From IMG/VR virus record IMGVR_UViG_3300031251_000001, positions 150,230 through 214,229 of that record: 64,000 bases of DNA. One strand, 5' to 3'. The notes under the pieces are model-generated. The model ran no database searches. It worked only from the letters and a program-made list of their open reading frames with translations, and was not told where the DNA came from. A program made the position numbers and the translations under genes. Below are positions 8,244 through 60,343 of the stretch, one piece after another; within the stretch, counting starts at the first letter, position 1; the number at the start of each line of letters is the position of its first letter.

Positions 8244-8259
8244 CAAAATACGTATTTTG
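8244..8259. promoter_or_regulatory. 16-bp palindrome CAAAATACGTATTTTG, copy 1
   Basis: Exact, intergenic. Confidence 0.85.
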
Positions 8260-8261
8260 GA

Positions 8262-8783
8262 TTACTTGGTTTTCTTGGGACGGCCCCGCTTGGGTGACTC
8301 GACGAGCGACTTACGGACACCGTTGAGATAATTGGTGTTGAGTAGCTCATAGAGATCATGAGCAAGGCGGTCACTGGCAGCCACGCAGATCTTCTGCAGG
8401 ACACGACCGCCGTCATAGACGACTTCACCGGTCAGGGTGAGTTTATTGTCATTACCGTCGATCTTGAAGTCGTGCAGGTCGGCAAGACCGGGATTGAGCT
8501 GGTTCTCTTTCTCTGCGGCGAGAAGTACCACTCTGGATGCCGTGGCACAGCCGTCATGCCGAAAAGATTCGACGATGATCGCGGCAGCGTGCTCCTGCAG
8601 AGAGTTGAAATTGAAGTAGCGGTTCTTCTCTCGCTGTACCTTCCACTGAGCGATCAGCTCGACAGCCACTTCATCGACCACCGCAGAGATCAGATCAATC
8701 TTGTCGATGACCTCGGAGAATGTGGGAGCATTGGCCACCAACATACCGAGGCGAGCCGCGAGAGCAGAATGGGTAACTCGCAT
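8262..8783 (-). CDS. hypothetical protein
   Basis: Start MRVTHS after AAGGA. Confidence 0.6.
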   Translation of the reverse strand: MRVTHSALAARLGMLVANAPTFSEVIDKIDLISAVVDEVAVELIAQWKVQREKNRYFNFNSLQEHAAAIIVESFRHDGCATASRVVLLAAEKENQLNPGLADLHDFKIDGNDNKLTLTGEVVYDGGRVLQKICVAASDRLAHDLYELLNTNYLNGVRKSLVESPKRGRPKKTK

Positions 8784-8791
8784 AGTAGTCC

Positions 8792-9991
8792 TTATTCGTG
8801 AGCCAGGCGGAAGGCCTTGGCTTGGGGCATCTTGGGAACACCCTTGCGGGTGAGGCAGAAGTATTTCACGGTCAGCATCTGACCGATCCACTTCTTGCCT
8901 TCCTTGAGGTAGCGACGCTTGTCTTCGTTGTCACCAGGTGCAGTGACCGTGAAAGTTTTCTTTGGGTCGCCGGGCATCATGCACATGAAGATCGCTTTAT
9001 CAGCAAAGGTCGACTTACCGGGGCTGACGCCGATAACCTCGAACTCCTTCTCGATCCAGACCTTGCACTTGTAGAGACCTTTCGATCTCTTGCTGGGATG
9101 GTAAGGCAGATCGAGACGGAGCATACAGCCTTCCTGGTGGTCGGCGATACACTCGTCACGGAACTTGATCAGATCCTCGTGACTATTACACACGAAGGTC
9201 GGCGTGAACTTGATGGCTTCATTCGGGAACAGGTCCGTCAATCGGGCCAACTCGCTGAGACGCTTCTCAAGCGGCAGTTGCGGCAGACTGGGCGTATACA
9301 AGTCGTAGACGTGGTAGACCATTTTGGCCTGGAGGTCGGCCCGTTCCTGATTCTTGGCCTCGCCGCGAATGGTGCCCGAGAGTTCCTCGAAATCGGCATC
9401 GGGATCGAACAGCTCACCATCGACGAGGATGAGCTCCTCAAACCGCACGTTGCTCGACTTGCGGTAGGGCTGGAGGGCCTCGACGATGTGTGGCATGGTA
9501 GGAATAGGTTTACTACCGCGACTGAACAGCTTCACGCCATCCTTGGTGATGTGAGCCACACAGCGGTGACCGTCCCACTTGGGCTGCGTCCACTTCTTAC
9601 CGGGAGTGGCAAAGATCACCTCGGGTTTGAAGTCCTCATAGGTCTCAGCCAGCATGGGTTGCAGATCACGCTTCTCGGCGGACTCCTTCCCGGTAGCGTC
9701 CTGGCTGTAGCCCTTGCTGTCGAGCTTCTTCTGCCACTTGGACTGGGCCTCCGCCAGGGCCTGCTCGACTGCCGTCGTAGCGTTGGCCTTGCCCAGGTTC
9801 TTGCCTTCCTTGATGACGTTGCGCTCTTCACGCATCTTCCCGCCCTCACGCCCATACCGGGTCGTGATGACGCCGTAGTCACCCTCCTGGGTGACCGTCA
9901 GGGTCCAGATTACCGGGTCCCCCACCGAGGCCGCTTTGGTCAGCGGGGGCAGCTGGTGTGGGAGCTTGATCTTGGGAGCCGTCGTCGCCAT
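8792..9991 (-). CDS. ATP-dependent DNA ligase with N-terminal WGR-like domain
   Basis: QPKWDGHRC (motif I), LVDGELF (III), YHVYDL (IIIa), EGCMLR (IV), LYKCK (V), C-terminal OB fold; N-terminal W...TRYGREGGK. Confidence 0.93.
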   Translation of the reverse strand: MATTAPKIKLPHQLPPLTKAASVGDPVIWTLTVTQEGDYGVITTRYGREGGKMREERNVIKEGKNLGKANATTAVEQALAEAQSKWQKKLDSKGYSQDATGKESAEKRDLQPMLAETYEDFKPEVIFATPGKKWTQPKWDGHRCVAHITKDGVKLFSRGSKPIPTMPHIVEALQPYRKSSNVRFEELILVDGELFDPDADFEELSGTIRGEAKNQERADLQAKMVYHVYDLYTPSLPQLPLEKRLSELARLTDLFPNEAIKFTPTFVCNSHEDLIKFRDECIADHQEGCMLRLDLPYHPSKRSKGLYKCKVWIEKEFEVIGVSPGKSTFADKAIFMCMMPGDPKKTFTVTAPGDNEDKRRYLKEGKKWIGQMLTVKYFCLTRKGVPKMPQAKAFRLAHE

Positions 9992-10276
9992 GTGCCATGC
10001 CTCTGAAATCGAACAACTGGCCCAGGATAGGATGACTCATCATCATGGGGGCCAGCTTGCCCTTACGTGGTTTAACGTCCTGGAACCGGAGCTCGGCCAG
10101 GCGTGAGAGTTCGTTGACGACACTCAGGATGAGCGTCGACATCATGTCGGGATCACTCGCAATGGAGGGATCAATGGTTAAGTCGAGAAGGCTGAACGGG
10201 GCGACCGCCGCCTTACCACTGACAAGCCCGGTGGGGTGTTTGTATTCCACCGGGCCGATGACGGACGACATAGGGT

Positions 10277-10864
10277 CTACTTTCCTTCGAGCGCTGCCGC
10301 CAGCTTGGCCAGCTCGGCGGGAACGTCCTCGAACTTTTCGGGGGCGGGGCAGAGAGCGAAACACTTAATGTTCTCGACGGAATAGAGACGGAAGTTGACA
10401 TCGGCCAGTTCACCCGTCTTCTTCTTGCTGCTGAGGATGAGCTCGGCCTCGGCGGTAGGGATCTCGGTTCCCTCGCTGTCGTAGTAGGTGGCCTTCTCCG
10501 GCCCCTTCATCTGATCGAGGCAGATGTAGAGCTTTTCGGGTGTCTTGATGTTCTGGTGGATGGGGGTAGGGCCACCGTCTGAAGCATTCTTGACCATCTG
10601 GTGGTAAGGAGCCCGCGCAGGCTTGAGGGGTGCTACCGTGTCGGCCGCGATGGCAGCGTTGACCTTTTCTTTAGCCTCACGCTCGCGGGCGATCGACTTA
10701 TCGAAGATGAGCTGACCCACGACGACGGATCGCTTGAACACCTCAGCAGCGGTAACCGTATCCTCGGGCTTGAGGACGACCATGGCGATCAGAGTTGGCT
10801 TGTTGGGCAGGTTGGTGCAGATGGCAGCAATTGGTTGATTCTCGACGAACAGATCCATAATCAA
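10277..10864 (-). CDS. hypothetical protein
   Basis: 195-aa ORF tiling the minus strand. Confidence 0.6.
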   Translation of the reverse strand: MIMDLFVENQPIAAICTNLPNKPTLIAMVVLKPEDTVTAAEVFKRSVVVGQLIFDKSIAREREAKEKVNAAIAADTVAPLKPARAPYHQMVKNASDGGPTPIHQNIKTPEKLYICLDQMKGPEKATYYDSEGTEIPTAEAELILSSKKKTGELADVNFRLYSVENIKCFALCPAPEKFEDVPAELAKLAAALEGK

Positions 10865-11203
10865 TTCCTAGATAAAGAAGAGGGAAGCCAGGCCGCTTTC
10901 GCGGCCCGCTCCGCCTTCGGGTTAGATGATGCCCAGGAGCTTCAGCCCCTGGACGATATAGGGTAGGGCCAGAGTGAGAGCAGCCGTGGTCAGGAAATAA
11001 CCACAGCAGTAGCCGGCTGTGTAGATCAGCAGGCGACGCCATTTGGCTTTGATCAGAGCAGCTTGTTGTTCCTTGCGGACAACGCTGACTTCGTGCAGGA
11101 TGCGGGTAACATTCAGAGTGAACTCAGCAGACATGGTCAACCCCTTGTAGGTAAGTGTGCGTTAGGTGCCGTTCATCAGTTATGACGCATAACGCCTCCC
11201 AGT

Positions 11204-11575
11204 TTAGTTGGGGTTTTCGTCCTCCACCCGTTCCGATTCTCTGGCTCCCTCCAGGGTGAAGGCTCGTACGTTCTCGGCGTTGATGTCCATCGCCAAGCGG
11301 ATCCAGAGGCTACCCTCATAGAACTCAAAGTAGGCAGGGGAGCCGTAACCCTCAACCGCGGTCTTCTCACCGTAACCGTTGAAATAGAGTTCCAGGAATT
11401 GATCGTTGTTGAGAACGGCCTTACCGGTCACGTGCCCATCACAGTCGGGCGAGTGGTCGATGAGCTTGAAGAAGAAGGTCCGCTTCAGCCGGCGGAACTC
11501 GCGATCGCGGACGTAGATGTCCACGATGATGGCAATCAGGATGGCAAAGAGCAGGATGCCGATAACAATGACCAT
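11204..11575 (-). CDS. membrane-anchored hypothetical protein
   Basis: N-terminal hydrophobic helix. Confidence 0.6.
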   Translation of the reverse strand: MVIVIGILLFAILIAIIVDIYVRDREFRRLKRTFFFKLIDHSPDCDGHVTGKAVLNNDQFLELYFNGYGEKTAVEGYGSPAYFEFYEGSLWIRLAMDINAENVRAFTLEGARESERVEDENPN

Positions 11576-12039
11576 GTGGGCCTCATGGAGTTAAGTGAAG
11601 TTTCAGAACAGGGGTACCAGGGATGCAGTAACCGGTGTCGGGGTCTTCGGTGATGTGCGAGACCACGGCCAGCGGCGTCTTGTCTTCGTACTCCTGGTTG
11701 TAGAGCTCCTGGGACATCCCAGGATGCCACTCGGCGATTTGGTAGTGCATCTCGCGCATCTTCTGGGCGAGCTGCATGGCGTTGACGACGGCACAGGTGT
11801 TGGTAGCGATGAAACCGCTGTGCAGCATCTTGTGCCAGTTCTGCTTGTTACGAACCTGGAAGTAGATGAAGTAGCGGGTGTGTGGCTTCCACACCCCGAC
11901 GAGGGGCTCGTAGACCCAGCGGGTTTCCCCTTCCAGGTGGATCGCCTTCTTGCGGTCCCATTCGATCTTGCCGCCGTAGAACTCCACCCGAACCGGGCAC
12001 TCCAGGGCGTGTTCCAGGGGAGGAACGATCCGCTGACAA

Positions 12040-13778: not shown

Positions 13779-13810
13779 AAAACGAAAACACCCCTCCACG
13801 AGGAGGGGTG
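13779..13810 (-). terminator. intrinsic terminator
   Basis: CACCCCTCC-TCGT-GGAGGGGTG followed by TTTTCGTTTT. Confidence 0.8.
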
Positions 13811-14043
13811 AGGGACTCGGGGTGAGGGTAGATTACTTGGCAGTCGTGGTGGCCGCAACGGTGGGTTTGCCGTGCACCGGGTCACCGACCGCCATCTTCT
13901 TGATCGCGATCACGCCGACCACGACCATCAGACAGATGAGACCGCCACCCACGAAGAACTTGTTCATTGAGCTCTTCGTCGCCGGATCCATCGGGATACT
14001 GTTATCCTGCTGCATGTCACTCTCCACTGGGTTAGATAACTCC

Positions 14044-14052
14044 AGTGTAGCA
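14044..14052 (-). promoter_or_regulatory. extended -10 element TGCTACACT
   Basis: Intergenic TGnTAnnnT. Confidence 0.4.
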
Positions 14053-14054
14053 CT

Positions 14055-14955: not shown

Positions 14956-14990
14956 AAAACGAAAGACCCCACGATGCAGGCCGTGGGGTC
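14956..14990 (-). terminator. intrinsic terminator
   Basis: GACCCCACG-loop-CGTGGGGTC followed by TTTCGTTTT. Confidence 0.75.
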
Positions 14991-15005
14991 AAAATACGTA
15001 TTTTG
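14990..15005. promoter_or_regulatory. 16-bp palindrome, copy 2
   Basis: Exact; abuts the terminator. Confidence 0.85.
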
Positions 15006-15295
15006 GATTCAGCGTGTCACTTAGGCTTGCCTGTTTGCGTACGAAAGAGGAAGCCGTCGTCCATTGAGACAGCGTCCGGGTATTCGTAGTCAAGGTTGGG
15101 CCAGTAGGTGACCGCCCAGCAGCGAAGCGACTTGTCACGGTAGATGCAATACTGCGGGAAGTCCTCATCGGCCATCTGGATAGAAAAGCCGATGTGGTCC
15201 GGACTGTCCTTGAACCATGTCAGGCGAAGCTGCGGTCGGGACAGCAAGAAGAGCAGCAAGGCAAAGACCAAGGCTTGGCGGATGATGATCATTGG

Positions 15296-15796
15296 TTACC
15301 TGCAGAACAGGTGCATGTACCGGCGACCGTCCGATCCCATCACCCACGCAGCTCCGCAGTAGGTGTAGTTATCGTACGTGCAGCACGCACCCCAACCCCA
15401 ATCTGGTGTCCAGGCAGCACAACCACCGGTGGTGGCGTGAGCATCAGGAGGGAGATAAGCGAAGTCACCATGCTGACCGCCACAATGTCCAGCGTTGTGG
15501 GACTGTGCCCGTACTCGAGCGCACGCCAAGGCACCCTGGGCGAGAAGCGGATCGTTGATATATGGCTTCAGCCCACGCTGTGCTCGGGTGGCGTTCACCT
15601 CGGCCAGGGCATCGGCACATTCGGCTGCTGATCCGTTGTAGGGAACCGGGGCTGACGGGATACCGCCACCACTGCTTCCACCACTGACTGGCTGCCAACC
15701 ACCGGAGTTACGGACACGACGACCGCTGGCGTCCAGGCCACCAACCAGCACCAACGCGACCAACAGACTTAAAGCGATTCTCATCACTGACTCCAA
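15296..15796 (-). CDS. secreted CAP/SCP-domain protein
   Basis: Signal peptide; ALAEVNATRAQRGLKPY..DPLLAQGA...GH and YTYCGAAWV...YMHLF. Confidence 0.75.
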   Translation of the reverse strand: MESVMRIALSLLVALVLVGGLDASGRRVRNSGGWQPVSGGSSGGGIPSAPVPYNGSAAECADALAEVNATRAQRGLKPYINDPLLAQGALACARVRAQSHNAGHCGGQHGDFAYLPPDAHATTGGCAAWTPDWGWGACCTYDNYTYCGAAWVMGSDGRRYMHLFCR

Positions 15797-21099: not shown

Positions 21100-21935
21100 G
21101 ACCCATCCTTGGGACTACGAGTGAGGCGGTTAGATGCTCTGTAGCATAGCGTCGGTCTCAGGTGTCGTACAGAGCAAGTGACGTGAAGGTTGGATGACAA
21201 GCTGCGTCACCGCTCGGGTGTGCTCCACCTGTAATTCTGGGCCGATCTGGGCATCCCGCCACTCATCGCCGATTCTCACAACTGGCACTAGATAAATGAA
21301 ACGATCATTAGCCTTGCGACAGCGGTAGGCGACGAGGCCCACCGCGTGGCTTTGATCATGGCCGAGCAGCACGATTTCATTCTGCCGCAAACGGCAGGCG
21401 ATAGAGTTCACGCTTTAAGTACCTCCATGACGACAACATCCCCTTTGCGGAGATACCCACGGTCAGGTAGGCCCTTGAGGTGCAGAATGCCGTTCAGCAT
21501 GTAAGTGCGGTTGATCACCGATTCAACGGACATCTCCCGGAGCGACGGAGAGAACATGAACGACCGCATCAAGAAGGTATGCCGCTCCTGGTTATAGTCG
21601 AGGATCTCGGCCGAGATGTAGTAGCTCATGAGTTCCACTGGTCTCCGTTTTCGGCCGCTGCCTTCAGCAAGCGGTCAACCGCATCGGGATAATCCTCGCA
21701 ATGCTGGCTGAAACCGACACCGTTCTCGCAGGTAGAATAGTGCCAGCGCTTGTCACCCTCATAGGAGATGGCCCGGTACTCCTTGACGCTAATGTTAACT
21801 TGAGCCTTGGTGAACTCTATCTGAACGAGTCTGGTTTTCATGGCGATCAAGCACGCTCTTCTGTCTGCCTCGACCACTCTGACTTCCAGACCACCAACAT
21901 CAATCGTCAGCGTTCGCATGTGTTCTCCTGGTGTG

Positions 21936-21951
21936 CAAAATACGTATTTTG
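21936..21951. promoter_or_regulatory. 16-bp palindrome, copy 3
   Basis: Exact, intergenic. Confidence 0.85.
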
Positions 21952-22179
21952 GAATCAGACAGCGACAGGCTTGGCGTCAACGAGCTTGCCGTCGATCCAG
22001 GCGTAGTTGACAGGGTCAGCACTCTCAGTGACGCGACGATCAGTGACCAGCACCCAACGGCACTCCAGGTCCTTGCCGTAGGCCTCAGCCTCCTCACGAG
22101 TGGCTAACCGCACAGCGTTGCTGTTCCACTCTTTACTGCGATCAGCGATGACTTCGACTTTGAAACTCATGGGTGTTCC

Positions 22180-29520: not shown

Positions 29521-30204
29521 TTAGAGATCGTCCTGCTGAGGGTCAGCATCGTTGACGTGGCGGATGAAGCCACGATGCAGCCAACCGTGAAAGCCGGGAC
29601 GAGACGGAGCAATGAAGATAGAGGGTTTGACGGTAACTCGTGGCACGGTGCCCTTGCGTGACCAGGCCGGGTTGCTGCCTGAGCTGATCGATGGCCCGTC
29701 GATAAACCAGTCTGAAATGTCGGGGCCTTCGCCACTGGGGTCAGACGGGCAGCGAACATAGAGACAGATGCCATCAGCACCCGTGAACTTATCCTTCTTA
29801 CCGTCCGAGCCGCGCCACCAGGAAGCATCCCACATGGCTCCTGCTGGTGCTCTGACCGGCCCACCAGGCAGCTCGCTCAGGTGCAAGTGATACTCACCGC
29901 CCTTATCGTCCTGGTAGATCACCTCCCAGAACAGCTCACGATCCTTCTTCTCGAACGCCAAACCACAGCTGCACTGAGCCGGCCAGCGTGTGTCTTCGGC
30001 AAAGGGCGTCATGTCGCCATGCCCGCCCAGGATGCCGCGTGCCTTATCCTCGGCACTGATGACACCATCCTCGACTCGATTCAAAGCAGAGTGATAACTG
30101 TAGTCACCGCCCATCGAAGGACACGGCCCGCTACGGCTGCACCGCAGCCACTGATAGCTGCGGTCACTCGGTTTGATGAAGAAGCAAAGGATAGGTTTCA
30201 TCAT
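29521..30204 (-). CDS. hypothetical protein with DUF6527-like C-terminus
   Basis: W.R.G..P..TVKPSI......FHGWLHRG motif. Confidence 0.55.
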   Translation of the reverse strand: MMKPILCFFIKPSDRSYQWLRCSRSGPCPSMGGDYSYHSALNRVEDGVISAEDKARGILGGHGDMTPFAEDTRWPAQCSCGLAFEKKDRELFWEVIYQDDKGGEYHLHLSELPGGPVRAPAGAMWDASWWRGSDGKKDKFTGADGICLYVRCPSDPSGEGPDISDWFIDGPSISSGSNPAWSRKGTVPRVTVKPSIFIAPSRPGFHGWLHRGFIRHVNDADPQQDDL

Positions 30205-30446
30205 GGGTGATTCACCTTCAGGTTGTTGAACCAGGTCACGATGAGGACGAGCAGCCCCCACACGCCGATGACAAACAAGGTGATCCAGAGTGGACTCATG
30301 ACCCAGAGCCAAGACCAGTCGATGGCCTTGAACAGCTTGAGAGCGATGAACACCAGCTGTACGATGCCGATGATGATGGCAATGACCATGATCACGAGCG
30401 ATTCAAAGATTGCTTCACCGAAGGAGTTGAAGTCCATTCCATCCTC

Positions 30447-30462
30447 CAAAATACGTATTTTG
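30447..30462. promoter_or_regulatory. 16-bp palindrome, copy 4
   Basis: Exact; adjacent to the GGAGG RBS of the gene starting at 30437. Confidence 0.85.
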
Positions 30463-31295
30463 AAACCTACTTGGCCATCACCAGCAGCATGAACGGCCAG
30501 GAGACCATCCACAGAGTGAACCAGTAGGGCAACGTGAACCCAGGAGCACCTTTAGCGACCAGGATGATCAAGGCCAGGACGAATCCGATAGTCAGATAGC
30601 CCAGCACGATGCCGGCCAGCAACCTGCCGGCGCCTTTACAGATCTTCCAAAGTGTTCGCATGCGGTACTCCGGAGTTCCTTACTCCAGTGTACCCTGTCG
30701 GCGTCTCCGCACACTGCGGAGCGAACCCCGTGGCGGGAAGTACCCGATGTCCTTGACTTGACCGTTATGGAACACCACGCGGATGTTCTCAGGGCTGATG
30801 TGAGTGATGATCCCTTCGCGGCCGAGGAGTGACTTACCGCCGGCCAGGGTCTCACCAGTGACTTTAACTTTGGTTTGAGGTCGCATCGTGCTCTCGCTGT
30901 TTGTCCAATACTGTTGAGATATCGAGCAGGTACAGGCCGAACCAGATGGGCAGGCACACCGCCACTGCTATCGACAGGACAACAATAACACCTGCGAGAA
31001 CGGACATCAACCATTTACCGGCTGCTGACCAGGCAACGAGCCCAGCAGGGCTGCACAGCCAGAAGATCAAGATGGCGACCGGGGCGATGATGAAGCCGTA
31101 AGCGGTTGCCCGCGTAAGGTGAACGAGGAAGCGCATCACGAGGCCATCCTTTCCCGGAGAGCAGCCTCCTTGGAGCGAGGCCGCGGCCAACCATGACGGT
31201 AGAAATAATTGCAACACTTCCGGCAGTAGTAGCCCTGATGCTTACCTTTGTCATTGACGACAACCAGGACCCTGCTGTAGGGAGTCTCGCAGTCC

Positions 31296-32003: not shown

Positions 32004-32084
32004 GTTTGTCCTTGGGATGATCCCGTTTGACTTGGCCAGGAGTAACCCCGGCCGTCGACCACATACCAGTACCCGGTCGTGGTG
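32004..32084 (-). CRISPR. putative minimal-repeat array A (ACGRCCGGG, 25-nt period)
   Basis: ACGACCGGG and ACGGCCGGG 25 nt apart, plus a degenerate AAACGGG about 25 nt further. Confidence 0.45.
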
Positions 32085-32150
32085 CGTTGTGCCGCCGAGT
32101 ACCCACCAGGAGCACCCTAAGCAGCGGTAGGCCTACCGGTGGCCCCGTGA
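32085..32150 (-). ncRNA. 66-nt structured scaffold element, copy A
   Basis: TCACGGGGCCACCGGTAGGCCTACCGCTGCTTAGGGTGCTCCTGGTGGGTACTCGGCGGCACAACG. Confidence 0.8.
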
Positions 32151-32421
32151 ACTGACTACTTGCTCTGGATGTTACAGCGGGCATCCCAGAACAGCAAGAT
32201 GACGATGGTGACGACCAGGCCAATGATGCCGGCCGTGCCCCAGTAATAGTCGAAGCTGGAGTCAAACCAGATCGCTGTCATGCAGAGCATGCAGGCTAGC
32301 ATGGAGAGCGTGAACGCTGCGTATTTGGCTGGTGGATCTGAAGGAATTGGCTTGTTAAAAGCATCGCCCAGCAACCTGCGTAGCTGGGCGTCCTTGTCGA
32401 AGTGAGGCATCGATAGCTCCG

Positions 32422-32874: not shown

Positions 32875-32996
32875 GACATATCTCCATTTGACCCGGTACG
32901 CTTATCCTAACCCCGGCTCGTGTTGCTTAGCCATATCTAGGTCCCCCGGTGCGGCAATTCCTTCCTTCCGGATCCAATGCAAGCCCGGCGGCGATG
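32875..32996 (-). repeat. irregular CCGG(G) array B
   Basis: CCGG at 32893, 32913, 32946, 32968, 32985; spacing irregular. Confidence 0.3.
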
Positions 32997-33062
32997 CGTT
33001 GTGCCGGCGAGCGTCCACCAGGGACGCCCTAACCAGCTGTGGGCCTACCGGTGGCCCCGTGA
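32997..33062 (-). ncRNA. 66-nt scaffold element, copy B
   Basis: TCACGGGGCCACCGGTAGGCCCACAGCTGGTTAGGGCGTCCCTGGTGGACGCTCGCCGGCACAACG. Confidence 0.8.
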
Positions 33063-33466
33063 CTTCAGTCTAACAAACGGGCGGCTGCCCATGCGGTGCT
33101 GAATGAAGAATCATGTCCTCCAGTCGGAGGTTGACGTCGTCGAGGTAGACCGGGCTAAAGCGGATGCGAGCTTCCTCTTTGGTGCCGTAGCTCGACTGGA
33201 CAGGCGGGTGCTGAGAGAGTTGCTGCTCCTGAACTCGCACCCAAGGCAAACCTCGCAGCTCATCGGGGAGCTTCTCGTAGTAAAGCCGGGAAGACCACTT
33301 CACCGGCGTCAACCACACTAGCTTGCCGTTCTCCTTCGACTCAAAGGTGGCGCCCTCGTAGACCATAAAGGTGCCACTTCGGAAGGCCATGATGGCGGTC
33401 ACCGGTCCCACGCCACATCTGATCTCGGTGGCCAACCGCATGGTGGCCACCGTACGACGGTGCGGG

Positions 33467-35550: not shown

Positions 35551-35889
35551 TTACTTATGATCTTTGACCAGCTGTTCACACTGCTGGGCATAGGTCTTGC
35601 CAATGAACTGCTGCTGGCGTAGAAATCCGAGCTTGGCTCTCGATGTCATCTTCTCCCAGAGCCGGGCTATCATGGGCCTGATCTTATCCAGGCCGACGCC
35701 AGATCGGAAGCGGAAACGACCCTCGGACAGGTCCCCCGTCTCCTCCATGACTCCACCAAGCTCTTCGGGCAGCTGATCACCACCGTCACAATCGATGTCA
35801 GAGTACATATTGACGATGCGTTCAGCGGTGAACTTGCTAGGTACGTTATTAACCCCTTGTGAGGGGTAAGGCGAGGCGTAGATAGGCAT
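35551..35889 (-). CDS. hypothetical protein
   Basis: Start MPIYASPY after AGGAG. Confidence 0.6.
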   Translation of the reverse strand: MPIYASPYPSQGVNNVPSKFTAERIVNMYSDIDCDGGDQLPEELGGVMEETGDLSEGRFRFRSGVGLDKIRPMIARLWEKMTSRAKLGFLRQQQFIGKTYAQQCEQLVKDHK

Positions 35890-35903: not shown

Positions 35904-35919
35904 CAAAATACGTATTTTG
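35904..35919. promoter_or_regulatory. 16-bp palindrome, copy 5
   Basis: Exact; directly at the end of array C. Confidence 0.85.
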
Positions 35920-36079
35920 GGTTCGTGTCTCCGCCCCTGCTTCGTGCTGGTGGACTCCACCTGCTGTGACAAGCCCGACTTGACTCCCTGCTACGAGGTA
36001 GCCAGATCGGCTCACCTGTTGCGAGCATTGGCATCTCCGCCCCTGCCCGTGCGGGAAGAGCATCAACACCCTGCTCGCT
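35920..36079 (-). CRISPR. putative minimal-repeat array C ((RG)CAGG x6)
   Basis: Plus-strand cctg at 36070, 36042, 36015, 35987, 35960, 35936 (periods 28, 27, 28, 27, 24). Confidence 0.6.
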
Positions 36080-36145
36080 CGTTGTGCCAGCGACCCGCCA
36101 CCAGGGCGAACCTAACCAGCTGTAGGCCTAGCAGAGGCCCCGTGA
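36080..36145 (-). ncRNA. 66-nt scaffold element, copy C
   Basis: TCACGGGGCCTCTGCTAGGCCTACAGCTGGTTAGGTTCGCCCTGGTGGCGGGTCGCTGGCACAACG. Confidence 0.8.
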
Positions 36146-36150
36146 ATCGA

Positions 36151-39907: not shown

Positions 39908-41641
39908 TTATTCCTCGGGTTGATCAGCTGCGTCCCTCTTCTCCTTGAGGATCTTCACCATCGCCTCCAGCTGCGACAGTGTATCGGCGTCACGGTCGGC
40001 CGTCCGCAGCATGCGCTTAGTGAGAGCACGTTTAGCGTAAAGCACCGTCACCGGCAGACGAGCCATAGCCTGGCCCACCGCTGCTGGACCACGAGAACGG
40101 AAGATGTCGTGGAACTTCTCGTAGAACTCCATGCTGTGCACATGCGTCCCGGTGTCAGCGTTGTCGTGACAGTGCTCATGGGCCAGCAGATGGACCAGGC
40201 TGCTGACGCCATCGACGTCGAACTGGAGCCTTCTCAGGTAGTCCCGGCCGATAGCAATGTAGCTCTCGCCGTCCGTCCAGCCCTCGGCCACCGGGGAGCG
40301 ACCGATGCAGAGCTTACGTCGCTTCTCCCAGCTGTTGCGTTCGCGTTTGATGATCAACCAGTAGGCAACATGAGCCAGCTTGAGCCAGATCCCCTCCAGG
40401 GCGGTGAGGTTCTTCTCGGCGATCAAGTCATAGCTCTCGCTGATCGACTTGATCAGCGACTGGAGACTACAGATCTTGTAGCTGGAACCCAGGTTCATCC
40501 TGTACGATTCCTTCCCTGTCCTGATCTTCCACATGACATCAAGGAACTTACTCAACGACATGTTGAACTTGCGCAGGGTCTCCTCGGCCACCACGAACGC
40601 CAGCTTCTGCTGAAACAGCTTATCAGCCCTGCGGTCACCCAGCGGAGCACTGGTGAGGCGTTCTTTGTACTGGTAGGAACATTGAAAGAACTGCTTGATG
40701 GAATAGTGACGACCTGAGCAAGCGGTGATGATCTTGAGATCAACAGCACCCGCCGGCACCTCATCCTGAGCGATCAAGTCGATGAGGCGTTGGCGTTCGT
40801 CATCGTTCATCGACTCCCTCTTGAGGAGTTCCTTCTGGGCGATCTGGTCGACGAACGGTTTGATCTTCCGCCACACCTTGCAGGACGATTGGACGTCGTT
40901 CCTGGCGAAGTTCACCTCCAGCTGCTGACGGCTGACGATGACGCCGCCTACGCCGAAGTGAGAGCCGGCCATGTCCAGTGTGTGCACGCCCAGGTTGTAA
41001 AGAGCCAGGGTGCCGGCACCACGGGTCAGGCGGATGTAGGCCTCATCGGTGACGAAGTCCCACTTTTCTTTAGCGGGGTCGACGTTGATCTTGGTGCCGT
41101 TGTAGACAACAACACACTGGGCGTACTTGGCCCAGCTGCGGATCAACCGCTCAGTCTCGGCAAAGTCCGAGGGCTTCATCCGCTCGTAGAGCTTGATCTC
41201 GATGCGGCAGCCATCCTTCTCAGGCAGGCCACTCTTGAGGTCGTAGTCCAGACCATCGTCGGCGATGTTGACGTTCATCTCGAATGGGCCGGTACGCCAG
41301 CGGTTGCGACCATAGGAGAACATCTGCCCACGGCCCATGCGGAAGGTGCCGTAGATCTTCTTCTCTTTCTCGGTGTGGGGCTGACCGAAGGTCTCAAAGA
41401 AGTCCTCGATCTGCTTGCGTTCGGCGATGCCGATACCGTTGTCGTCGATGAGGACGCTCTCAGGGGTGACGGTGATGGAGCACTTGGTGGCTTTGGCGTC
41501 CACCGAGTTCATGACCCCTTCGAGCACGGCCTTGGCCAGAGTGCCGGCCTGCCGCTTGATAACGTCCAGGAGGAGCTTCGGGTGCATCCCGAAGCGACGG
41601 CGCTCGATGTTGTCGGTACGTGCGAGTGCGGAAACGGACAT
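39908..41641 (-). CDS. GHKL (HATPase_c/Hsp90-like) ATPase protein
   Basis: EGVMNSVDA, IDDNGIG, YGTFRMGRG, GCRIEI; HEHCH near the C-terminus. Confidence 0.85.
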   Translation of the reverse strand: MSVSALARTDNIERRRFGMHPKLLLDVIKRQAGTLAKAVLEGVMNSVDAKATKCSITVTPESVLIDDNGIGIAERKQIEDFFETFGQPHTEKEKKIYGTFRMGRGQMFSYGRNRWRTGPFEMNVNIADDGLDYDLKSGLPEKDGCRIEIKLYERMKPSDFAETERLIRSWAKYAQCVVVYNGTKINVDPAKEKWDFVTDEAYIRLTRGAGTLALYNLGVHTLDMAGSHFGVGGVIVSRQQLEVNFARNDVQSSCKVWRKIKPFVDQIAQKELLKRESMNDDERQRLIDLIAQDEVPAGAVDLKIITACSGRHYSIKQFFQCSYQYKERLTSAPLGDRRADKLFQQKLAFVVAEETLRKFNMSLSKFLDVMWKIRTGKESYRMNLGSSYKICSLQSLIKSISESYDLIAEKNLTALEGIWLKLAHVAYWLIIKRERNSWEKRRKLCIGRSPVAEGWTDGESYIAIGRDYLRRLQFDVDGVSSLVHLLAHEHCHDNADTGTHVHSMEFYEKFHDIFRSRGPAAVGQAMARLPVTVLYAKRALTKRMLRTADRDADTLSQLEAMVKILKEKRDAADQPEE

Positions 41642-52439: not shown

Positions 52440-52530
52440 GTTTCCTTCGGGGCTACGGTGTCCTGACTCGTTGATGTGCGACGAGCCTTACCTGACTCGC
52501 CGCTATTGGGAACGAACTCCCTGACAGATG
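52440..52530 (-). CRISPR. putative minimal-repeat array D (CGAGTCAGG, 29-nt period)
   Basis: Plus-strand cctgac at 52462, 52491, 52520; 20-nt spacers. Confidence 0.65.
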
Positions 52531-52596
52531 CGTTGTGCCGGCGACCACCCACCAGGAGTGCCCTGACCGGCTGTAGGCGTGTCAGACGCCCCGTGA
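52531..52596 (-). ncRNA. 66-nt scaffold element, copy D
   Basis: TCACGGGGCGTCTGACACGCCTACAGCCGGTCAGGGCACTCCTGGTGGGTGGTCGCCGGCACAACG. Confidence 0.8.
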
Positions 52597-52601
52597 ACGG
52601 A

Positions 52602-52913
52602 TTACTTGCCGTGGATCTTAGCTTCATTCATGCGAATGATCTCGTCGACGGTCATGGCACTGCGCTTGACGTTGCATTCAGCACAGGCCCAGACGAGGTT
52701 CTCACGTTCGTTGGTGCCGCCCAGGCTCAGTGGAAGGATATGTTCCACGGTTCGGCAATCGGGCGGCTGGGGGTTGGTGTTGGGCGGGTAGACCACCATG
52801 ACTTTGTCACACCAGAAGCAGAGGTCGGACTGAGGTCCTTGCTCCAGCATTTTCCGGCGTGCCTTCTGGCGTCTACCCGACTCGTTGCGCTTCCGTCTCC
52901 TCGGTGCGATCAT
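52602..52913 (-). CDS. small HNH endonuclease
   Basis: CFWC...TVEHILPLSLGGTNERENLVWACAECNVKR. Confidence 0.9.
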   Translation of the reverse strand: MIAPRRRKRNESGRRQKARRKMLEQGPQSDLCFWCDKVMVVYPPNTNPQPPDCRTVEHILPLSLGGTNERENLVWACAECNVKRSAMTVDEIIRMNEAKIHGK

Positions 52914-52938: not shown

Positions 52939-52954
52939 CAAAATACGTATTTTG
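52939..52954. promoter_or_regulatory. 16-bp palindrome, copy 6
   Basis: Exact, intergenic. Confidence 0.85.
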
Positions 52955-53754
52955 CCGGGTGGCAGGGGACAAACTCCTGCCGTGACTATGACGTCACACC
53001 TTCGCACCAGGCAATTACCAGCCGCTGATTGAGGGTTGCATGACGAGCTTGTCGCCGATGCTGACCCTGCCTGGGCCAAACAGCTCCGGCTTGGGCTTGT
53101 CATTGATTGTGATGATGTGAGGCCAGATCTCCTCCAGGGAGACAGCCCTTTCCAGGGAATTGCGGTAGACCACATAAGCGATGTGGTTATCGCGGAGGTC
53201 ATTACGAGTGATGTAGATAGTGTTGTTCTTGGTAGCGGTGCACTCAGGTGGGGCTTCAGGTGCGATGAGGAAACCAGGTGAGCTGTTCTCAATTGATATC
53301 AGACGCAGTACGTTACTGTTGTTATCAAAGGTGTACGACTGCCCACCCGTTTTTACGATGAGCTTCCGGTCAAAACTATTCTGCTCAGTAAGTGCTTCCA
53401 GCTCCACCACAGCGTCTTGCCTCGCAATGAGGCTACCGAACGTCTCGATCCAGATCTTCATAGCTGTCTCCTTGGGTTAACCAACGCCGCCCAGCAACAC
53501 CTCGACCTCGAACAAGAACCGATCCATATCCATCTTGGGGAACATGGCCGAATCGGTGTAGGGTCCGGATCGTTTGATGCTTACACGGGGATCCTTGTTG
53601 AGTCCAGCCATGACGAACCTGGACTGGGACATCGGCCCCACCACAGTGTACCGAACGATTACCTCAGTACCAGAGGTCTTGCAGTTATCGAACTTGGGTG
53701 GGTCGTAAGCGGGGATGCGCATGTTAGTCTCCTAGTCGGGGATGTGGTGATCCG

Positions 53755-57161: not shown

Positions 57162-57167
57162 AGTGGT

Positions 57168-57176
57168 AATGTACCA
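57168..57176 (-). promoter_or_regulatory. extended -10 TGGTACATT, 6 nt before ATG (possibly leaderless)
   Basis: No SD sequence; spacing to ATG at 57161. Confidence 0.5.
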
Positions 57177-57200
57177 CAGACGCTGGGGTTGGTGGTGGGA

Positions 57201-57512
57201 TCAAAGCGAAGGCAGGCAAGCGTGGGCGACGTCGGAGGTGAAGAGCTCTCCTGGGCCGTTGCCTTCGGTGTCACGAGAAGCGTAGAGATGGACGTCGTTG
57301 TCGAGGATGATGACCAGAGGACGATTATCCCAGCGCATGTCGGTTGCCTCCTTCTTGGTCATGTACCTGACGTGCTTGATGGTGCGATCACGCAGGAGAT
57401 CAGTAGCAACAGCGGTCCAGTAGGTTTCACGCTGCTTAGCGTTGGAGAGGTCGTATTGCTTTCTGTGGTGAGTAACGATGGATGGCATGAGGTTGTTCCT
57501 GAGAGTTGACAT
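57201..57512 (-). CDS. hypothetical protein
   Basis: ASRDTEGNGPGELF motif; follows array E. Confidence 0.6.
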   Translation of the reverse strand: MSTLRNNLMPSIVTHHRKQYDLSNAKQRETYWTAVATDLLRDRTIKHVRYMTKKEATDMRWDNRPLVIILDNDVHLYASRDTEGNGPGELFTSDVAHACLPSL

Positions 57513-57642
57513 ACTGGTATTGCGTGCCCGTCACGACAGATCTGGCAAGGTGCCCGTCCGGAGGACGATACGGTACATGCCCGCCCTTGAAAGGTCGGGG
57601 CATGGACCCGTCCTCGGAGTGACGGCCAATACCGTCCCTGTT
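57513..57642 (-). CRISPR. putative minimal-repeat array E (GRCGGGCA, 26-27-nt period)
   Basis: Plus-strand cccg at 57527, 57553, 57580, 57607 and cctg at 57637. Confidence 0.6.
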
Positions 57643-57708
57643 CGTTGTGCCGACGCGTGCCCACCAGGAGCACGCTAATCAGCTGTAGGCCTGACGGAGG
57701 CCCCGTGT
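57643..57708 (-). ncRNA. 66-nt scaffold element, copy E
   Basis: ACACGGGGCCTCCGTCAGGCCTACAGCTGATTAGCGTGCTCCTGGTGGGCACGCGTCGGCACAACG. Confidence 0.8.
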
Positions 57709-58529
57709 GCTTGATTGTTAGAACCTTGGTCTAGGCAGTTCCTTTGATTCTTCCACAGTCGGCTCAGGTGTGGGTTGGTGCCGGGCCTCCAGGGCGGAAA
57801 TGCGACTTGATAGCGACTCATTCACGATCGCTTGCTCGGAGATCTTGTTCTCGATGCGGATGTGTTGAATGGTGTGAATGACCAGGTAACCCATGGCGAA
57901 CCAGAAGATGAAATCAAACATGTGTTCCTTAGTTGATACTGGGTTTACCTGCCACACGGCGTAACACCGTGGTCAGGGCCTCATTGGTGATGTCGGCTCG
58001 GTCGGGGTCAGTCACCTCGCGGCAACCATCCTCGACGATAACGATGTCATGCTCGCAATGGTCAGCGAGGAAGCGAAAGATCGGGGCAGTCTCGCCGCCA
58101 TCGCCCATGACCGAGAACTCGGCCCCGCTGATGTGCAGCAAGTAGGCCAGAGAATCCGACTCAGCCAGTACCCGACGCAGGAACTCTTCGCTCACGCGAC
58201 TGGACTGGGGCGAGTCGAGATTGCAGGTCTTGCAGCGGTAACTCATGTCGACAGACATAGTGACTCCTCACAGTTCGCCACGTGATTGCAACAGTTTGAT
58301 CATGGCGGGATGAATCCAGAACACCTTGTTGCATTGGCAGGTGATGGCGATCCGTGTACCTACGGGCAAATGGGCCAACTCGTCGTTGCCGCCACGATCA
58401 GTCTCCGCCTTGTCGATGGTAGTCATGCGGTGATCTGCCGTGCTGAGCGTACGACATAGGGAGTGCCACTGACTGCGGACATAGCCCATGAACTTGGTGT
58501 TCGATAGTGTTTCTTTCATCGAGTCTCCT

Positions 58530-58612
58530 TAATTAGCCTGTTCGCCATTTCCCATCCAGCAATCCGGTCAACTGGTCCCATCCGGATTCAGGTTATGCCA
58601 CTCCCACCCGAT
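58530..58612 (-). CRISPR. putative minimal-repeat array G (GGRTGGGA, 26-nt period)
   Basis: Plus-strand ccca at 58551, 58577, 58603; 18-nt spacers. Confidence 0.65.
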
Positions 58613-58678
58613 CGTTGTGTCAACGCCAATCCACCAGGGATGAGCTCATTGACGGTAGGCGTGATGGACGCCCCGTAG
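58613..58678 (-). ncRNA. 66-nt scaffold element, copy G
   Basis: CTACGGGGCGTCCATCACGCCTACCGTCAATGAGCTCATCCCTGGTGGATTGGCGTTGACACAACG. Confidence 0.8.
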
Positions 58679-58738
58679 CCGTGAGGCCTCATGCGGTGTA
58701 AGCTGATCGCAGGCAATAATGCCACCAGAGGACCTCGC

Positions 58739-60325
58739 ATGCTAGATCAGAAACGAGTTGTGCTACCAGGTAGCGACCGCAAACCCTTAGAGGGTGCCAC
58801 GGTTGCAGCCGGCCACCGTCATAGTGAAAGGTTTGAGGTCACCGTGCGTCTGCGACGCAAGGCACCAATCAAACCCGAAGGAGCCCAACACGAGGATGTC
58901 CTTCCCGCTGATCGCAAGTATATGACCTGTGATCAGTATCTTGCACAGCATGGTGCCAAGCAGGAAGATGTTGATTTGGTGACAGCGTTTGCCAAGTTGT
59001 ACGGTCTGACGGTAGTCGATGTCAGCCTGGCACGCCGTAGTGTGTTCTTGTCGGGTTGTACCGAGCAGTTTGAGAAGGCCTTCAGTACCACGATCGCTGA
59101 CATGGAGCACCCTGGTGGCGGTTATCGCGGCCGAACTGGTCCACTCACAATCCCCGAGAGCCTGTCAGGCATCGTGGAAGCTGTGTTGGGCATCGACAAC
59201 CGCAAGATCGCCAAGCCCCACTTCCAGATGGCTAAGAGGCTGCAGGGTGCGACACCACACGCCAGCCACTCTTCCTACAATCCCAACGATGTCGCCAAGG
59301 CGTACAACTTCCCCACCGGGGTAGATGGTACGGGACAGTGCATTGCCTTGATCGAGCTCGGTGGCGGTTATCGTCTGCCTGACATCACCGCCTACTTCAC
59401 CAAGCTGGGACTGAAGGTGCCCACCGTGAAGACCGTGCGCGTTGATGGCGGCACCAACTCACCGACCACCGCCGATGGCGCTGACGGTGAAGTGATGCTG
59501 GATATCGAAGTAGCGGCAGCAGTGGCACCAGGTGCCACCATTGTCGTCTACTTTGCTCCCAACACCGATAAGGGCTTCCTTGACGCGATCACCATGGCCG
59601 CTCACGACACGGTCAACAAGCCTTCGGTCATCTCCATCAGCTGGGGTGGACCGGAAGCACAGTGGACCGTGCAGGCTCGCGTCGCCATGGATCAGGCGTT
59701 CATCTCAGCCTCCGTGCTGGGTCTGACCATCTGTGTGGCTGGCGGCGACAATGGTTCGACCGATGGCATGACTGACGGCAAGAACCACGTGGACTTCCCC
59801 GGCTCGAGCCCACACGCTCTTTGCTGCGGCGGAACACGACTGGGAATCGGCAGCTCCGGGCAAATCAGCTCGGAATCTGTGTGGAACGATAATCCCACAC
59901 AGAGCGCCACCGGTGGCGGTATCAGTGATGCCTTCAACGTGCCGGTCTATCAGAAGTCCGCTAACATCCCTCCCTCGGCTAATCCCAACAAGAAGTCGGG
60001 ACGCGGATGTCCGGATGTGGCCGGCAATGCTGATCCTTCCTCGGGTTACAACGTCCGCGTGGACGGTGGAAACTATGTGATTGGCGGCACCAGTGCGGTT
60101 GCTCCGCTCTATGCCGGACTGGTAGCACTCTTAAACCAGAAGCTGGGACACCGTTGCGGCTACCTCCACCCGCTGCTGTATGGCAGCGTGCAGGGCAAGG
60201 GAGCCTTCAACGACATCACGTCTGGTAACAACGGTGCTTACCACGCCCAAAAGGGCTGGGATTGCTGCACAGGGCTGGGCACACCCAACGGGCAGGCCCT
60301 CTATATTGCCCTGGGCGGCAAATAG
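58739..60325 (+). CDS. S53 family peptidase (kumamolisin/sedolisin-like) with propeptide
   Basis: Triad motifs GEVMLDIE (ExxxD) and GGTSAVAP, oxyanion GDNG, SISWG, C-terminal GWDCCTGLGTP. Confidence 0.95.
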   Translation: MLDQKRVVLPGSDRKPLEGATVAAGHRHSERFEVTVRLRRKAPIKPEGAQHEDVLPADRKYMTCDQYLAQHGAKQEDVDLVTAFAKLYGLTVVDVSLARRSVFLSGCTEQFEKAFSTTIADMEHPGGGYRGRTGPLTIPESLSGIVEAVLGIDNRKIAKPHFQMAKRLQGATPHASHSSYNPNDVAKAYNFPTGVDGTGQCIALIELGGGYRLPDITAYFTKLGLKVPTVKTVRVDGGTNSPTTADGADGEVMLDIEVAAAVAPGATIVVYFAPNTDKGFLDAITMAAHDTVNKPSVISISWGGPEAQWTVQARVAMDQAFISASVLGLTICVAGGDNGSTDGMTDGKNHVDFPGSSPHALCCGGTRLGIGSSGQISSESVWNDNPTQSATGGGISDAFNVPVYQKSANIPPSANPNKKSGRGCPDVAGNADPSSGYNVRVDGGNYVIGGTSAVAPLYAGLVALLNQKLGHRCGYLHPLLYGSVQGKGAFNDITSGNNGAYHAQKGWDCCTGLGTPNGQALYIALGGK

Positions 60326-60327
60326 TC

Positions 60328-60343
60328 CAAAATACGTATTTTG
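60328..60343. promoter_or_regulatory. 16-bp palindrome, copy 7 (20 bp perfect here)
   Basis: TCCAAAATACGTATTTTGGA between convergent stop codons. Confidence 0.85.

Follow-up and report, generated by a model that had tools for sequence, protein, structure and literature searches.

Why does a large phage genome, packed with genes that nearly all point in one direction, carry the same short palindrome over and over at fairly regular distances? Here we examine a 16-base palindrome, CAAAATACGTATTTTG, in an uncultured jumbo phage with a genome of 214,229 bp (IMG/VR record IMGVR_UViG_3300031251_000001). A first-pass annotation, made from the letters of a 64,000-nucleotide stretch of this record alone (hereafter the window), had reported seven exact intergenic copies of this AT-rich motif next to ribosome-binding sites (RBSs), next to a terminator and between convergent stop codons. 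It proposed a site for a dimeric DNA-binding protein used for genome organisation (parS/matS-like) or a roadblock stoperator, rather than a promoter. We find that the whole genome holds 22 identical copies at intervals of about 10 kb and that distant relatives carry their own, different palindromes at partly the same places, which points to an undescribed genome-wide DNA recognition system whose reader protein and purpose have not been identified.

Genome sequence and analysis procedure

The window corresponds to bases 150230-214229 of the virus record; below, the phage genome is designated G000, and the relatives and further clade members compared with it are designated G001 to G009. Exact and mismatched copies were counted by pattern scanning and compared with dinucleotide shuffles, genes were called on the window and the genome, and the flanks of the sites were examined. 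Proteins were scanned with Pfam or PHROGs profiles, and the motif was sought in IMG/VR, GTDB genomes and metagenomes. The phage encodes a cellular-type beta/beta' RNA polymerase (RNAP) and a sigma factor, and 253 of its 261 genes (about 97%) lie on one strand. A fused beta/beta' RNAP and one-strand gene order mark members of its clade, which has at least 554 members in IMG/VR.

Occurrence and genomic context of the palindrome

The reported observation is confirmed. The window contains seven exact copies and no copies with 1-3 mismatches, whereas dinucleotide shuffles gave 0.03 copies on average and never reached seven. The record as a whole contains 22 exact copies and one copy with a single mismatch. 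The motif is 25% G+C in a genome of 57.6% G+C. An assembly or adapter artefact had been named in advance as one outcome that would overturn the observation; it is excluded, since a 267-nt contig from a different sample and study (run X2) spans the first site without a difference, and relatives show analogous motifs. This comparison rested on assembled contigs, and read ends and nicks were not examined.

All seven window sites are intergenic by our gene calls (Table 1). Five of them (copies 1, 3, 4, 5 and 6) sit 9-25 nt upstream of a minus-strand start codon with a GGAG-type RBS. The core lies in a dyad of roughly 20 bp (TC-core-GA), usually squeezed between a stop codon and the next RBS, and there are seven copies of the 18-bp and three of the 20-bp perfect palindrome. 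Genome-wide, 12 of 22 sites lie within 40 nt upstream of a start codon, 4-5 lie inside coding sequence, and only 2 of 22 follow a terminator, which does not favour terminator-promoter pairing. The element itself does not have the form of an intrinsic terminator: its stem is A/T-rich, at -2.6 to -5.7 kcal/mol as DNA, and is followed by GGA and an RBS rather than a T-run. A sigma-70-type promoter is likewise not indicated, as no -35 region is conserved, only 1 of 3 sites in the stretch scanned was hit, and total hits were below the shuffle mean.

Table 1. Copies of the palindrome in the window and associated features (window coordinates unless stated otherwise)
Feature	Position	Strand	Context
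Palindrome copy 1	8244..8259	.	On the minus strand: stop of a 173-aa gene (8262-8783), 2 nt, motif, 13 nt containing GGAGG, then ATG of a 104-aa gene (7916-8230)
Palindrome copy 2	14990..15005	.	11 nt after the stop of a 91-aa gene (15017-15292); a terminator-like hairpin (14990-14965) with a T-rich tail follows directly on the minus strand
Palindrome copy 3	21936..21951	.	Between the stop of a 71-aa gene (21955-22170) and the RBS and ATG of a 97-aa gene (21626-21919), 16 nt from that ATG
Palindrome copy 4	30447..30462	.	Between the stop of a 64-aa gene (30467-30661) and the ATG of a 78-aa gene (30201-30437); the RBS GGAGGA abuts the motif
Palindrome copy 5	35904..35919	.	14 nt upstream of the ATG of a 112-aa gene (35551-35889); a copy of the 70-nt structured repeat (36078-36150) lies upstream in the same intergenic region
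Palindrome copy 6	52939..52954	.	25 nt upstream of an ATG at 52913 (ORF 52602-52913) and 60 nt after the stop of a 148-aa gene (53015-53461)
Palindrome copy 7	60328..60343	.	Between convergent stops: the plus-strand pro-kumamolisin/S8 peptidase gene (58739-60325) and the minus-strand 616-aa GHKL-ATPase-like gene (60350-62200)
Contig of run X2	8100-8366		Spans copy 1
Canonical parS	15463-15478 (genome)		Single perfect consensus copy; a different sequence from the palindrome

Palindromes in related genomes

Mapping the motif across the full genome and its relatives had been proposed as a check of the observation. Exact-pattern scans of IMG/VR, part of the GTDB genome contigs and metagenomes gave only single chance copies besides the source contig, and no close relative with the same motif was found. 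All five fully retrieved relatives examined at that stage, at about 30-35% protein identity, nevertheless have one dominant exact palindrome of their own, in 14-34 copies. Four of these five, and the motif of G000, are even-length with no free central base, and in all six genomes the base composition of the motif is opposite to that of the genome. One further relative, G008, has degenerate sites with the same half-site and a free centre. G000, G001, G003 and G008 share the half-site TTTT-R-R-R-A, and in G008 the centre of 4-6 bp is variable and occurs in both orientations, as expected for two half-sites read by a dimer. At the same alignment columns of an orthologous protein of about 500 aa, G001 has AAAAACGTTTTT (KNVF) and G003 has AAAACCGGTTTT (KTGF), a symmetric double change.

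Spacing is more even than random in all six genomes, with a CV of 0.49-0.73 against about 0.93 (combined P 3.4e-9); in G003, 33 archetype sites have gaps of 3.3-12.5 kb and a CV of 0.34. Site positions are conserved between genomes beyond chance, even inside genes, with 23 pairs within 300 bp against 10.9 expected (P about 1e-3). In G002, G004 and G005 the sites lie inside ORFs, and relative to start codons, at the random rate, whereas in G000, G001 and G003 they are strongly enriched within 40 nt upstream of start codons (p 1e-6 to 1e-12). Several sites precede DNA-metabolism genes (DNA polymerase, UvsX-like, SbcD and ThyX) or RNAP-adjacent genes, and some of these junctions are conserved across lineages with different motifs. 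Some clade members (G006, G007 and G009, the last with 160 of 226 kb examined) and the outgroups Salmonella phage Arash and Vibrio phage D69 have few or no such sites; in Arash and D69, the nearest isolates by RNAP (~30% identity), no such palindrome was found. The central hexamers are not depleted elsewhere in the genomes, which counts against restriction avoidance. String searches for the motifs and topic searches of the literature found no description of this feature.

Search for a reader protein

A ParB or HTH protein whose presence tracks the motif had been suggested as the thing to look for, and none was found. Whole-genome scans of G000 were negative for ParB_N (PF02195, no match at E<=1), HTH_3 and Phage_integrase. 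Among about 115 G000 proteins scanned with Pfam or PHROGs, no DNA-binding domain was detected apart from the sigma factor, and PDB profile searches of three candidate families found nothing. An Atlas look-up of the 143-aa protein downstream of the best-conserved site gave only noise-level hits, and the conserved ORF next to the RNAP gene looks membrane-like or structural rather than DNA-binding. Phylogenetic profiling revealed no G000 gene family that separates palindrome-rich from palindrome-poor genomes. The conserved unknown ORFs of G000 include those of the recombination module at 11.4-17.6 kb with the DUF1016 nuclease, the RNAP-adjacent genes at 107.6-111 kb and the early-region ORFs of the window.

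Insights from the genome sequence

The interpretation offered in the first-pass annotation is partly supported. A site for a two-fold symmetric, dimeric reader fits better than a promoter, by inference, since the symmetry runs through the centre and into the flanks although the genes point one way, relatives keep dyad symmetry while changing the sequence, sites in three relatives lie inside ORFs at the random rate, and spacing is over-even. Membership of any named family is not supported, and the choice between organisation and roadblock was not tested.

We tentatively favour, with slightly less than even confidence, the reading that the 16-mer is the invariant core of a two-fold symmetric recognition site of 20-24 bp (consensus AATC-CAAAATACGTATTTTG-GATT), read by an unidentified, probably phage-encoded, homodimeric sequence-specific DNA-binding protein. 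In this view the sites would act on duplex DNA as genome-wide address sites, possibly as anchoring points, topological-barrier points or loading points for a factor that works along the DNA, and they are probably not promoters. The position between a stop codon and the next RBS would then be mainly the least harmful place to park an AT-rich 20-mer in a tightly packed GC-rich genome. The sites, their symmetry, spacing, lineage-specific sequence and partly orthologous positions come directly from the sequence analysis, whereas the dimeric reader and an organisational or regulatory function, rather than transcription initiation, are deduced from them. The site between convergent genes is in keeping with this reading, and the random placement in G002, G004 and G005 implies that the function does not need an intergenic or 5'-UTR context. 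The missing reader, the palindrome-poor clade members, and the invariance of all 16 positions, unusual for transcription-factor sites, weigh against it, and an expression-linked signal would explain the enrichment upstream of start codons, and the position of several sites before DNA-metabolism genes, more directly.

A core promoter or start-proximal signal of the phage's own multisubunit RNAP for a middle- or late-type gene class, co-evolving with a polymerase specificity factor as T7-group promoters do, appears unlikely but is the strongest of the rivals. It draws on the encoded RNAP and sigma factor (in the distant relative Arash these proteins are in the virion; PMC10585845), on the position of the sites upstream of start codons and of the genes named above, and on a composition that makes chance copies rare and an information content far above need, both typical of phage-polymerase promoters. 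However, a perfectly symmetric signal would also fire antisense; only 13-25 nt separate the motif from the ATG, such that a -10-type reading of the downstream half would, by inference, start the RNA inside or after the RBS; copy 7 faces the antisense of a peptidase gene; the sigma factor of G000 has no detectable homologue in the relatives; and the placement in G002, G004 and G005 is random with respect to genes. The lack of -35-like conservation, the scarcity of preceding terminators and the even spacing, where T7 promoters are clustered, also speak against it. The sites lack the asymmetry of T7-like promoters, yet no RNA run was listed from which transcript starts could be read, and this comparison therefore stays without a decision either way.

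A target of a phage-encoded endonuclease or nickase making programmed breaks at regular intervals, for example to start recombination-dependent replication or packaging or to give T5-like nicks, is also doubtful. The invariance of all 16 contiguous positions, centre included, resembles restriction-type recognition, the spacing is even, the phage has SbcC/SbcD, a UvsX-like recombinase and a DUF1016-type PD-(D/E)XK nuclease in one module, and in G001 and G003 a site lies directly upstream of the DUF1016 gene. The centre that varies in sequence and length in G008 is nevertheless unlike cleavage-site recognition by a type II-like dimer, and contigs from two samples run through the sites. An RNA hairpin just 5' of the RBS, serving as a processing site, stabiliser or translational operator, is very unlikely. 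Most sites of G000, G001 and G003 do lie between stop codon and RBS on the transcribed strand, and a stem of 6-10 bp with an ACGU loop can form, but the stems are A-U rich and weak, and the central 4 nt are self-complementary in the motif of G000 and in four of the five relatives' (the centre in G008 is not), for which a hairpin loop has no reason. Moreover, most sites in G002, G004 and G005, and the 4-5 in G000, are inside coding sequence, and one lies between convergent genes. Least likely is a tiny selfish or mobile palindromic element (REP/MITE-like) that spread recently into gene junctions: the copies are identical with diverged flanks and look like insertions into otherwise tight junctions, but orthologous positions carry different lineage-specific palindromes in genomes only about 30-45% identical in protein, spacing is over-even, and the motif is not multi-copy in any other viral, genomic or metagenomic contig scanned.

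A more far-reaching reading, which we consider unlikely though compatible with the data, is that several lineages of a large clade of uncultured phages of ~200-230 kb, with unidirectional genomes and a cellular-type RNAP, use a previously undescribed chromosome-wide system of 15-35 evenly spaced, co-evolving palindromic sites that anchor or load a phage factor. Possible roles are topological-domain barriers for very long co-directional transcription, condensation, multiple replication origins or loading of a sliding regulator, and the site sequence would switch between lineages while the positions persist. If the address-site reading holds, very large phage genomes can carry a chromosome-scale set of address sites that are maintained for long evolutionary times, change sequence in concert and are spaced as if the distance between them matters. 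This would open the testable question of how a 200-kb, one-directional virus genome is organised, transcribed or replicated. One dominant palindrome per genome would also give a simple signature for sorting members of a large uncultured phage clade, and a natural data set for studying how a DNA reader and some twenty sites change specificity together.

Comparison with known systems

The nick sites of T5-like and phiKMV-like phages are conserved short sequences at a few to many fixed positions in virion DNA, but they are asymmetric and lie on one strand, and there is no evidence for nicks here. Promoters of phage-encoded RNAPs (T7, T3, SP6 group) share with the present sites about 10-20 nearly identical copies per genome, an information content far above need, lineage-specific sequence at syntenic positions and some copies inside genes, but they are asymmetric, co-oriented with genes and clustered.

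The chromosome-organising palindromes of the parS/ParB, matS/MatP, NBS/Noc and SBS/SlmA systems are 12-16 bp long, are read by dimers, are scattered without regard to genes, and organise DNA rather than start transcription. They are cellular systems with known readers, none of which was found here, and are not reported as evenly spaced. The motif is unrelated to the parS consensus TGTTNCACGTGAAACA, the sites are spread over the whole genome rather than clustered near an origin, and the host is unknown. Binding by MatP, Noc or SlmA was not measured, and the motif was not seen more than once per contig in the portion of GTDB genome contigs covered by the scan.

Stoperators of cluster A mycobacteriophages (L5 gp71) also comprise more than 20 near-identical sites spread over a phage genome, many in short intergenic spaces, but they are asymmetric 13-mers bound by a monomer, orientation-dependent and a feature of temperate phages (PMC9283540). 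Here the sites are perfectly symmetric, flanks included, the relatives' sites are mostly intragenic, no integrase or HTH_3 match was found in G000, and the genome is of a jumbo myovirus type with its own RNAP. With regard to the KorB (OB) and KorA (OA) operators of IncP plasmid RK2, the sequences are unrelated, KorB is a ParB-family CTPase while no ParB_N is encoded here, and the phage has about 22 evenly spaced sites over 214 kb with an unidentified reader. The likeness to KorB/OB is functional only: the RK2 operators are near-invariant short palindromes dispersed around a mobile genome, some far from promoters or inside genes, and are read by dimers, with KorB loading there and sliding along the DNA (PMC11790492).

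Occurrence of the palindrome and genome features

The palindrome CAAAATACGTATTTTG was recovered exactly at each of the seven window positions listed in the first-pass annotation, whose observation is therefore confirmed, and no relatives with 1-3 mismatches were present in the window. Shuffled sequences gave 0.03 matches on average. The window constitutes the last 64 kb of a 214,229-bp IMG/VR virus record from a rhizosphere metagenome, here designated G000, and mapping of the motif across the full record, a check proposed at the outset, yielded 22 exact copies and one 1-mismatch copy. The imperfect copy, CAAAATACGGATTTTG, lies in an AT-rich non-coding stretch after a hairpin and keeps the GGATT flank, and may be a decaying or weaker site. 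An assembly or adapter artefact had been named beforehand as grounds for rejection; however, a contig assembled from another sample and study spans one of the sites, motif included, with no difference, and the motif is therefore real sequence. The two ends of the record repeat the same ~120 bases, so that the record, although labelled linear, is most likely a circular or circularly permuted assembly.

Genes were predicted using our own hexamer-based gene caller, which placed 253 of 261 genes on the minus strand. The genome encodes a family B DNA polymerase, a DnaB-like helicase, a UvsX-like recombinase, SbcC/SbcD, a large terminase and a baseplate protein, as well as a C5 DNA methylase, ThyX, a DNA ligase and others. 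A cellular-type RNA polymerase (RNAP) is encoded in two genes, one with beta fused to the N-terminal part of beta' and one with the C-terminal part of beta', together with a sigma-70-family, ECF-like sigma factor. In several relatives the RNAP gene is interrupted by intein or LAGLIDADG domains. A 72-aa protein matches the Tad2-like anti-Thoeris domain (E 3e-13), one of the few plus-strand genes encodes a pro-kumamolisin/S8 peptidase, and two paralogous-looking ~600-aa proteins carry an N-terminal GHKL ATPase domain (HATPase_c_3), which is unusual for phages. The RNAP defines a large uncultured clade of at least 554 IMG/VR loci, many of them on 180-235-kb contigs. The nearest isolates, Salmonella phage Arash and Vibrio phages, are only about 30% identical in the RNAP; in Arash, RNAP beta, beta' and a sigma factor are abundant in virions (PMC10585845).

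Coordinates of the features in the window and in the whole record of G000
Feature	Reference	Position	Strand
Span of the contig from an independent sample	window	8100-8366	
Repeat of about 70 nt	window	57641-57713, 52529-52601, 36078-36150, 32995-33067, 32083-32155	minus
Repeat of about 70 nt, further copies	genome	147022-147094, 122619-122691, 5096-5168	
Repeat of about 70 nt, weaker copies	genome	near 213852 and 208867	
Canonical parS consensus (locus L029, outside the window)	genome	15463-15478	
Sigma-70-like unit	genome	161417 (window about 11150-11230)	minus
Sigma-70-like unit, further copies	genome	113681, 84096, 47343, 6510	
Terminator hairpins followed by a conserved string (outside the window)	genome	121501, 113258, 82985, 5171	
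Imperfect copy of the palindrome (L030:18745-18760)	genome	33745-33760	
RNAP in two genes, and sigma factor (outside the window)	genome	96994-107659 and 26732-27358	
Tad2-like protein (outside the window)	genome	1756-1974	
Pro-kumamolisin/S8 peptidase	window	58739-60325	plus
Two GHKL ATPase-domain proteins	window	39908-41641, 60350-62200	minus
Repeated ends of the record	genome	1-120 and 214110-214229	

Structure of the site and neighbouring elements

Read on the transcribed (minus) strand, the usual layout consists of the stop codon of the upstream gene, 2-6 nt, the motif, and 13-25 nt containing a GGAG-type RBS, followed by the ATG. The flanks extend the dyad to the consensus AATC-core-GATT, with seven perfect 18-mers and three perfect 20-mers. 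Four or five of the 22 sites lie inside long ORFs of conserved protein families, one window site lies between convergent genes, and only two sites follow an intrinsic terminator. As single-stranded DNA the element folds weakly, at -2.6 to -5.7 kcal/mol.

A repeat of about 70 nt sits on the transcribed strand in at least 8 copies and has a conserved two-hairpin consensus structure, in which 8 of 19 pairs show compensatory changes, an invariant CCTGGTGG loop region and a GGCACAACG tail. It has no Rfam match and may be an undescribed phage structured RNA or a regulatory cassette. Five copies of a sigma-70-like unit (CTAAAYT, 17 bp, then CATAAC) are each followed by a conserved TGAACGG and, in some cases, by a terminator hairpin within about 50 nt; these may be strong promoters or small-RNA genes. 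Strong terminator hairpins followed by the conserved string TTTTCTTTAGC may represent a terminator-promoter cassette. One perfect copy of the canonical bacterial parS consensus, TGTTTCACGTGAAACA, lies inside the 5' end of the UvsX-like gene, 61 bp from a palindrome site. None of the relatives has this sequence, and the genome encodes no ParB_N protein. It may recruit a host ParB.

Comparison with related genomes

After a scan of 80 RNAP-anchored loci of about 25 kb each, five complete or near-complete relatives (G001-G005) were retrieved, which share 40-64 reciprocal-best genes with G000 at about 30-35% identity. Each of the five has one dominant exact palindrome of its own. All six genomes have nearly all genes on one strand, although the call for the 69% G+C genome G003 is less reliable. 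The motif is AT-rich where the genome is GC-rich and GC-rich where the genome is AT-rich, which keeps chance copies rare.

Dominant palindromes of the six genomes and sites within 40 nt upstream of a start codon (random expectation 0.03-0.05)
Genome	Palindrome	Copies	Sites within 40 nt	Result
G000	CAAAATACGTATTTTG	22	12 of 22	p 1e-6 to 1e-12
G001	AAAAAACGTTTTTT	17-18	12 of 18	p 1e-6 to 1e-12
G003	AAAACCGGTTTT	25	7 of 25	p 1e-6 to 1e-12
G004	AAAGATATCTTT	14	0 of 14	no different from random
G002	GAGACGTCTC, mostly within GTGGAGACGTCTCCAC	18	2 of 18	no different from random
G005	TAGCGCGCTA	34	3 of 34	no different from random

The feature is patchy across the clade. Of the further genomes examined, G006 and G007 have 6 and 3 copies, respectively, of the G004-type motif, whereas G009 (160 of 226 kb examined), Arash and Vibrio phage D69 have none. 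Arash (OQ632216, loci L043-L052) has no palindrome family, but does have a 10-copy asymmetric repeat, TTACTTATACCA, within ACTTTACTTATACCAG, which may be its own promoter motif. Genome G008 has no exact palindrome, but about 17-25 degenerate sites of the form YYN-AAAA, then 4-6 variable bases, then TTTT-GRGAA, with none in the reversed-sequence control. G000, G001, G003 and G008 thus share a half-site, TTTT-R-R-R-A, and only the centre is fixed or free, which is the pattern of two half-sites read by a symmetric dimer.

Spacing and position of the sites

In every one of the six genomes the gaps between sites are more even than for random points, with a CV of 0.49-0.73 against about 0.93, individual P values of 0.0004-0.036 and a Fisher combined P of 3.4e-9. 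With the shared-archetype pattern, G003 has 33 sites with gaps of 3.3-12.5 kb and a CV of 0.34, and G001 has 24 sites with a CV of 0.48. Sites were mapped between genomes through orthologous gene ends, which gave 23 pairs within 300 bp against 10.9 expected, and 60 within 1 kb against 36 expected (P about 1e-3 and 2e-4, respectively), although the genome pairs are not fully independent. Shared positions include the junction upstream of thyX in G000, G003 and G005; the junction upstream of a small gene near the RNAP genes in G000, G001 and G003, and in the nearest relative, L423, where the palindrome is CATATCCGGATATG; the junction upstream of the DNA polymerase gene in G000 and G002; and the junction upstream of sbcD in G000, G003 and G005, with degenerate copies in G001 and G008. 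Inside one orthologous ~500-aa gene, G001 and G003 carry their palindromes at the same alignment columns, encoding KNVF and KTGF, respectively, and the two motifs differ by a symmetric pair of substitutions.

The relation of the sites to genes differs by lineage. In G004, G005 and G002 most sites lie inside ORFs at the random rate, and the function common to all lineages therefore cannot depend on a 5'-UTR position. For the AT-rich motifs in GC-rich genomes, the stop-to-RBS gap may simply be the cheapest place to put them, which is our inference.

Interpretation of the site

The analysis thus confirmed and extended the copies themselves, while what reads them is inferred, and the reading given in the first-pass annotation was supported in part. 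Its core idea, a site for a dimeric DNA-binding protein rather than a promoter, is the best-supported reading, but it is held tentatively and has not been shown; of the named families to which it likened the site, parS and the stoperators do not apply, and for matS no cognate reader was identified. In favour of a dimeric reader of duplex DNA, the symmetry runs through the centre and into the flanks, the motif of G000 and those of four of the five relatives are even-length with no free central base, the evolution of the motif is symmetric, G008 has a free-centre variant, the function is independent of gene context, and the spacing is even. No reader protein was found in the searches made, which included the check for an encoded ParB that had been suggested beforehand. 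A promoter of the phage polymerase would account for the position just upstream of start codons in three lineages, often before DNA-metabolism genes, and for the T7-like pattern of lineage-specific, information-rich sites at syntenic places. No RNA data were available for this comparison, and the promoter reading is opposed by the perfect symmetry in a one-directional genome, the lack of room for a 5' UTR if the downstream half were a -10 element, the site at the convergent junction, the random placement in three lineages, the absence of a -35 signal and the lack of any detectable homologue of the G000 sigma factor in the relatives.

A nuclease target is compatible with the full-length invariance and with the recombination genes, but is hard to square with the variable centre in G008. 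An RNA hairpin is unlikely, since loops need not be self-complementary, the stems are weak and many sites are intragenic. A mobile mini-element is likewise unlikely, because positions are orthologous across very distant genomes.

Comparison with known systems

Text searches found no description of this feature. The nearest functional analogues are the dispersed palindromic KorB and KorA operators of plasmid RK2, where a clamp loads at the site and slides (PMC11790492), the many stoperators of cluster A mycobacteriophages (PMC9283540), and cellular organiser sites such as parS, matS, NBS and SBS. Membership in the KorB, parS and stoperator families fails on a defining feature: no ParB-family protein is encoded, the site is symmetric rather than asymmetric, and there are no signs of a temperate life style. 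For matS, NBS and SBS no cognate reader was identified, and the host is unknown. We therefore place the system with the dispersed cognate sites on a mobile genome, with three features that have not, as far as we could find, been described for such sites, namely even spacing, persistence of positions and concerted change of sequence.
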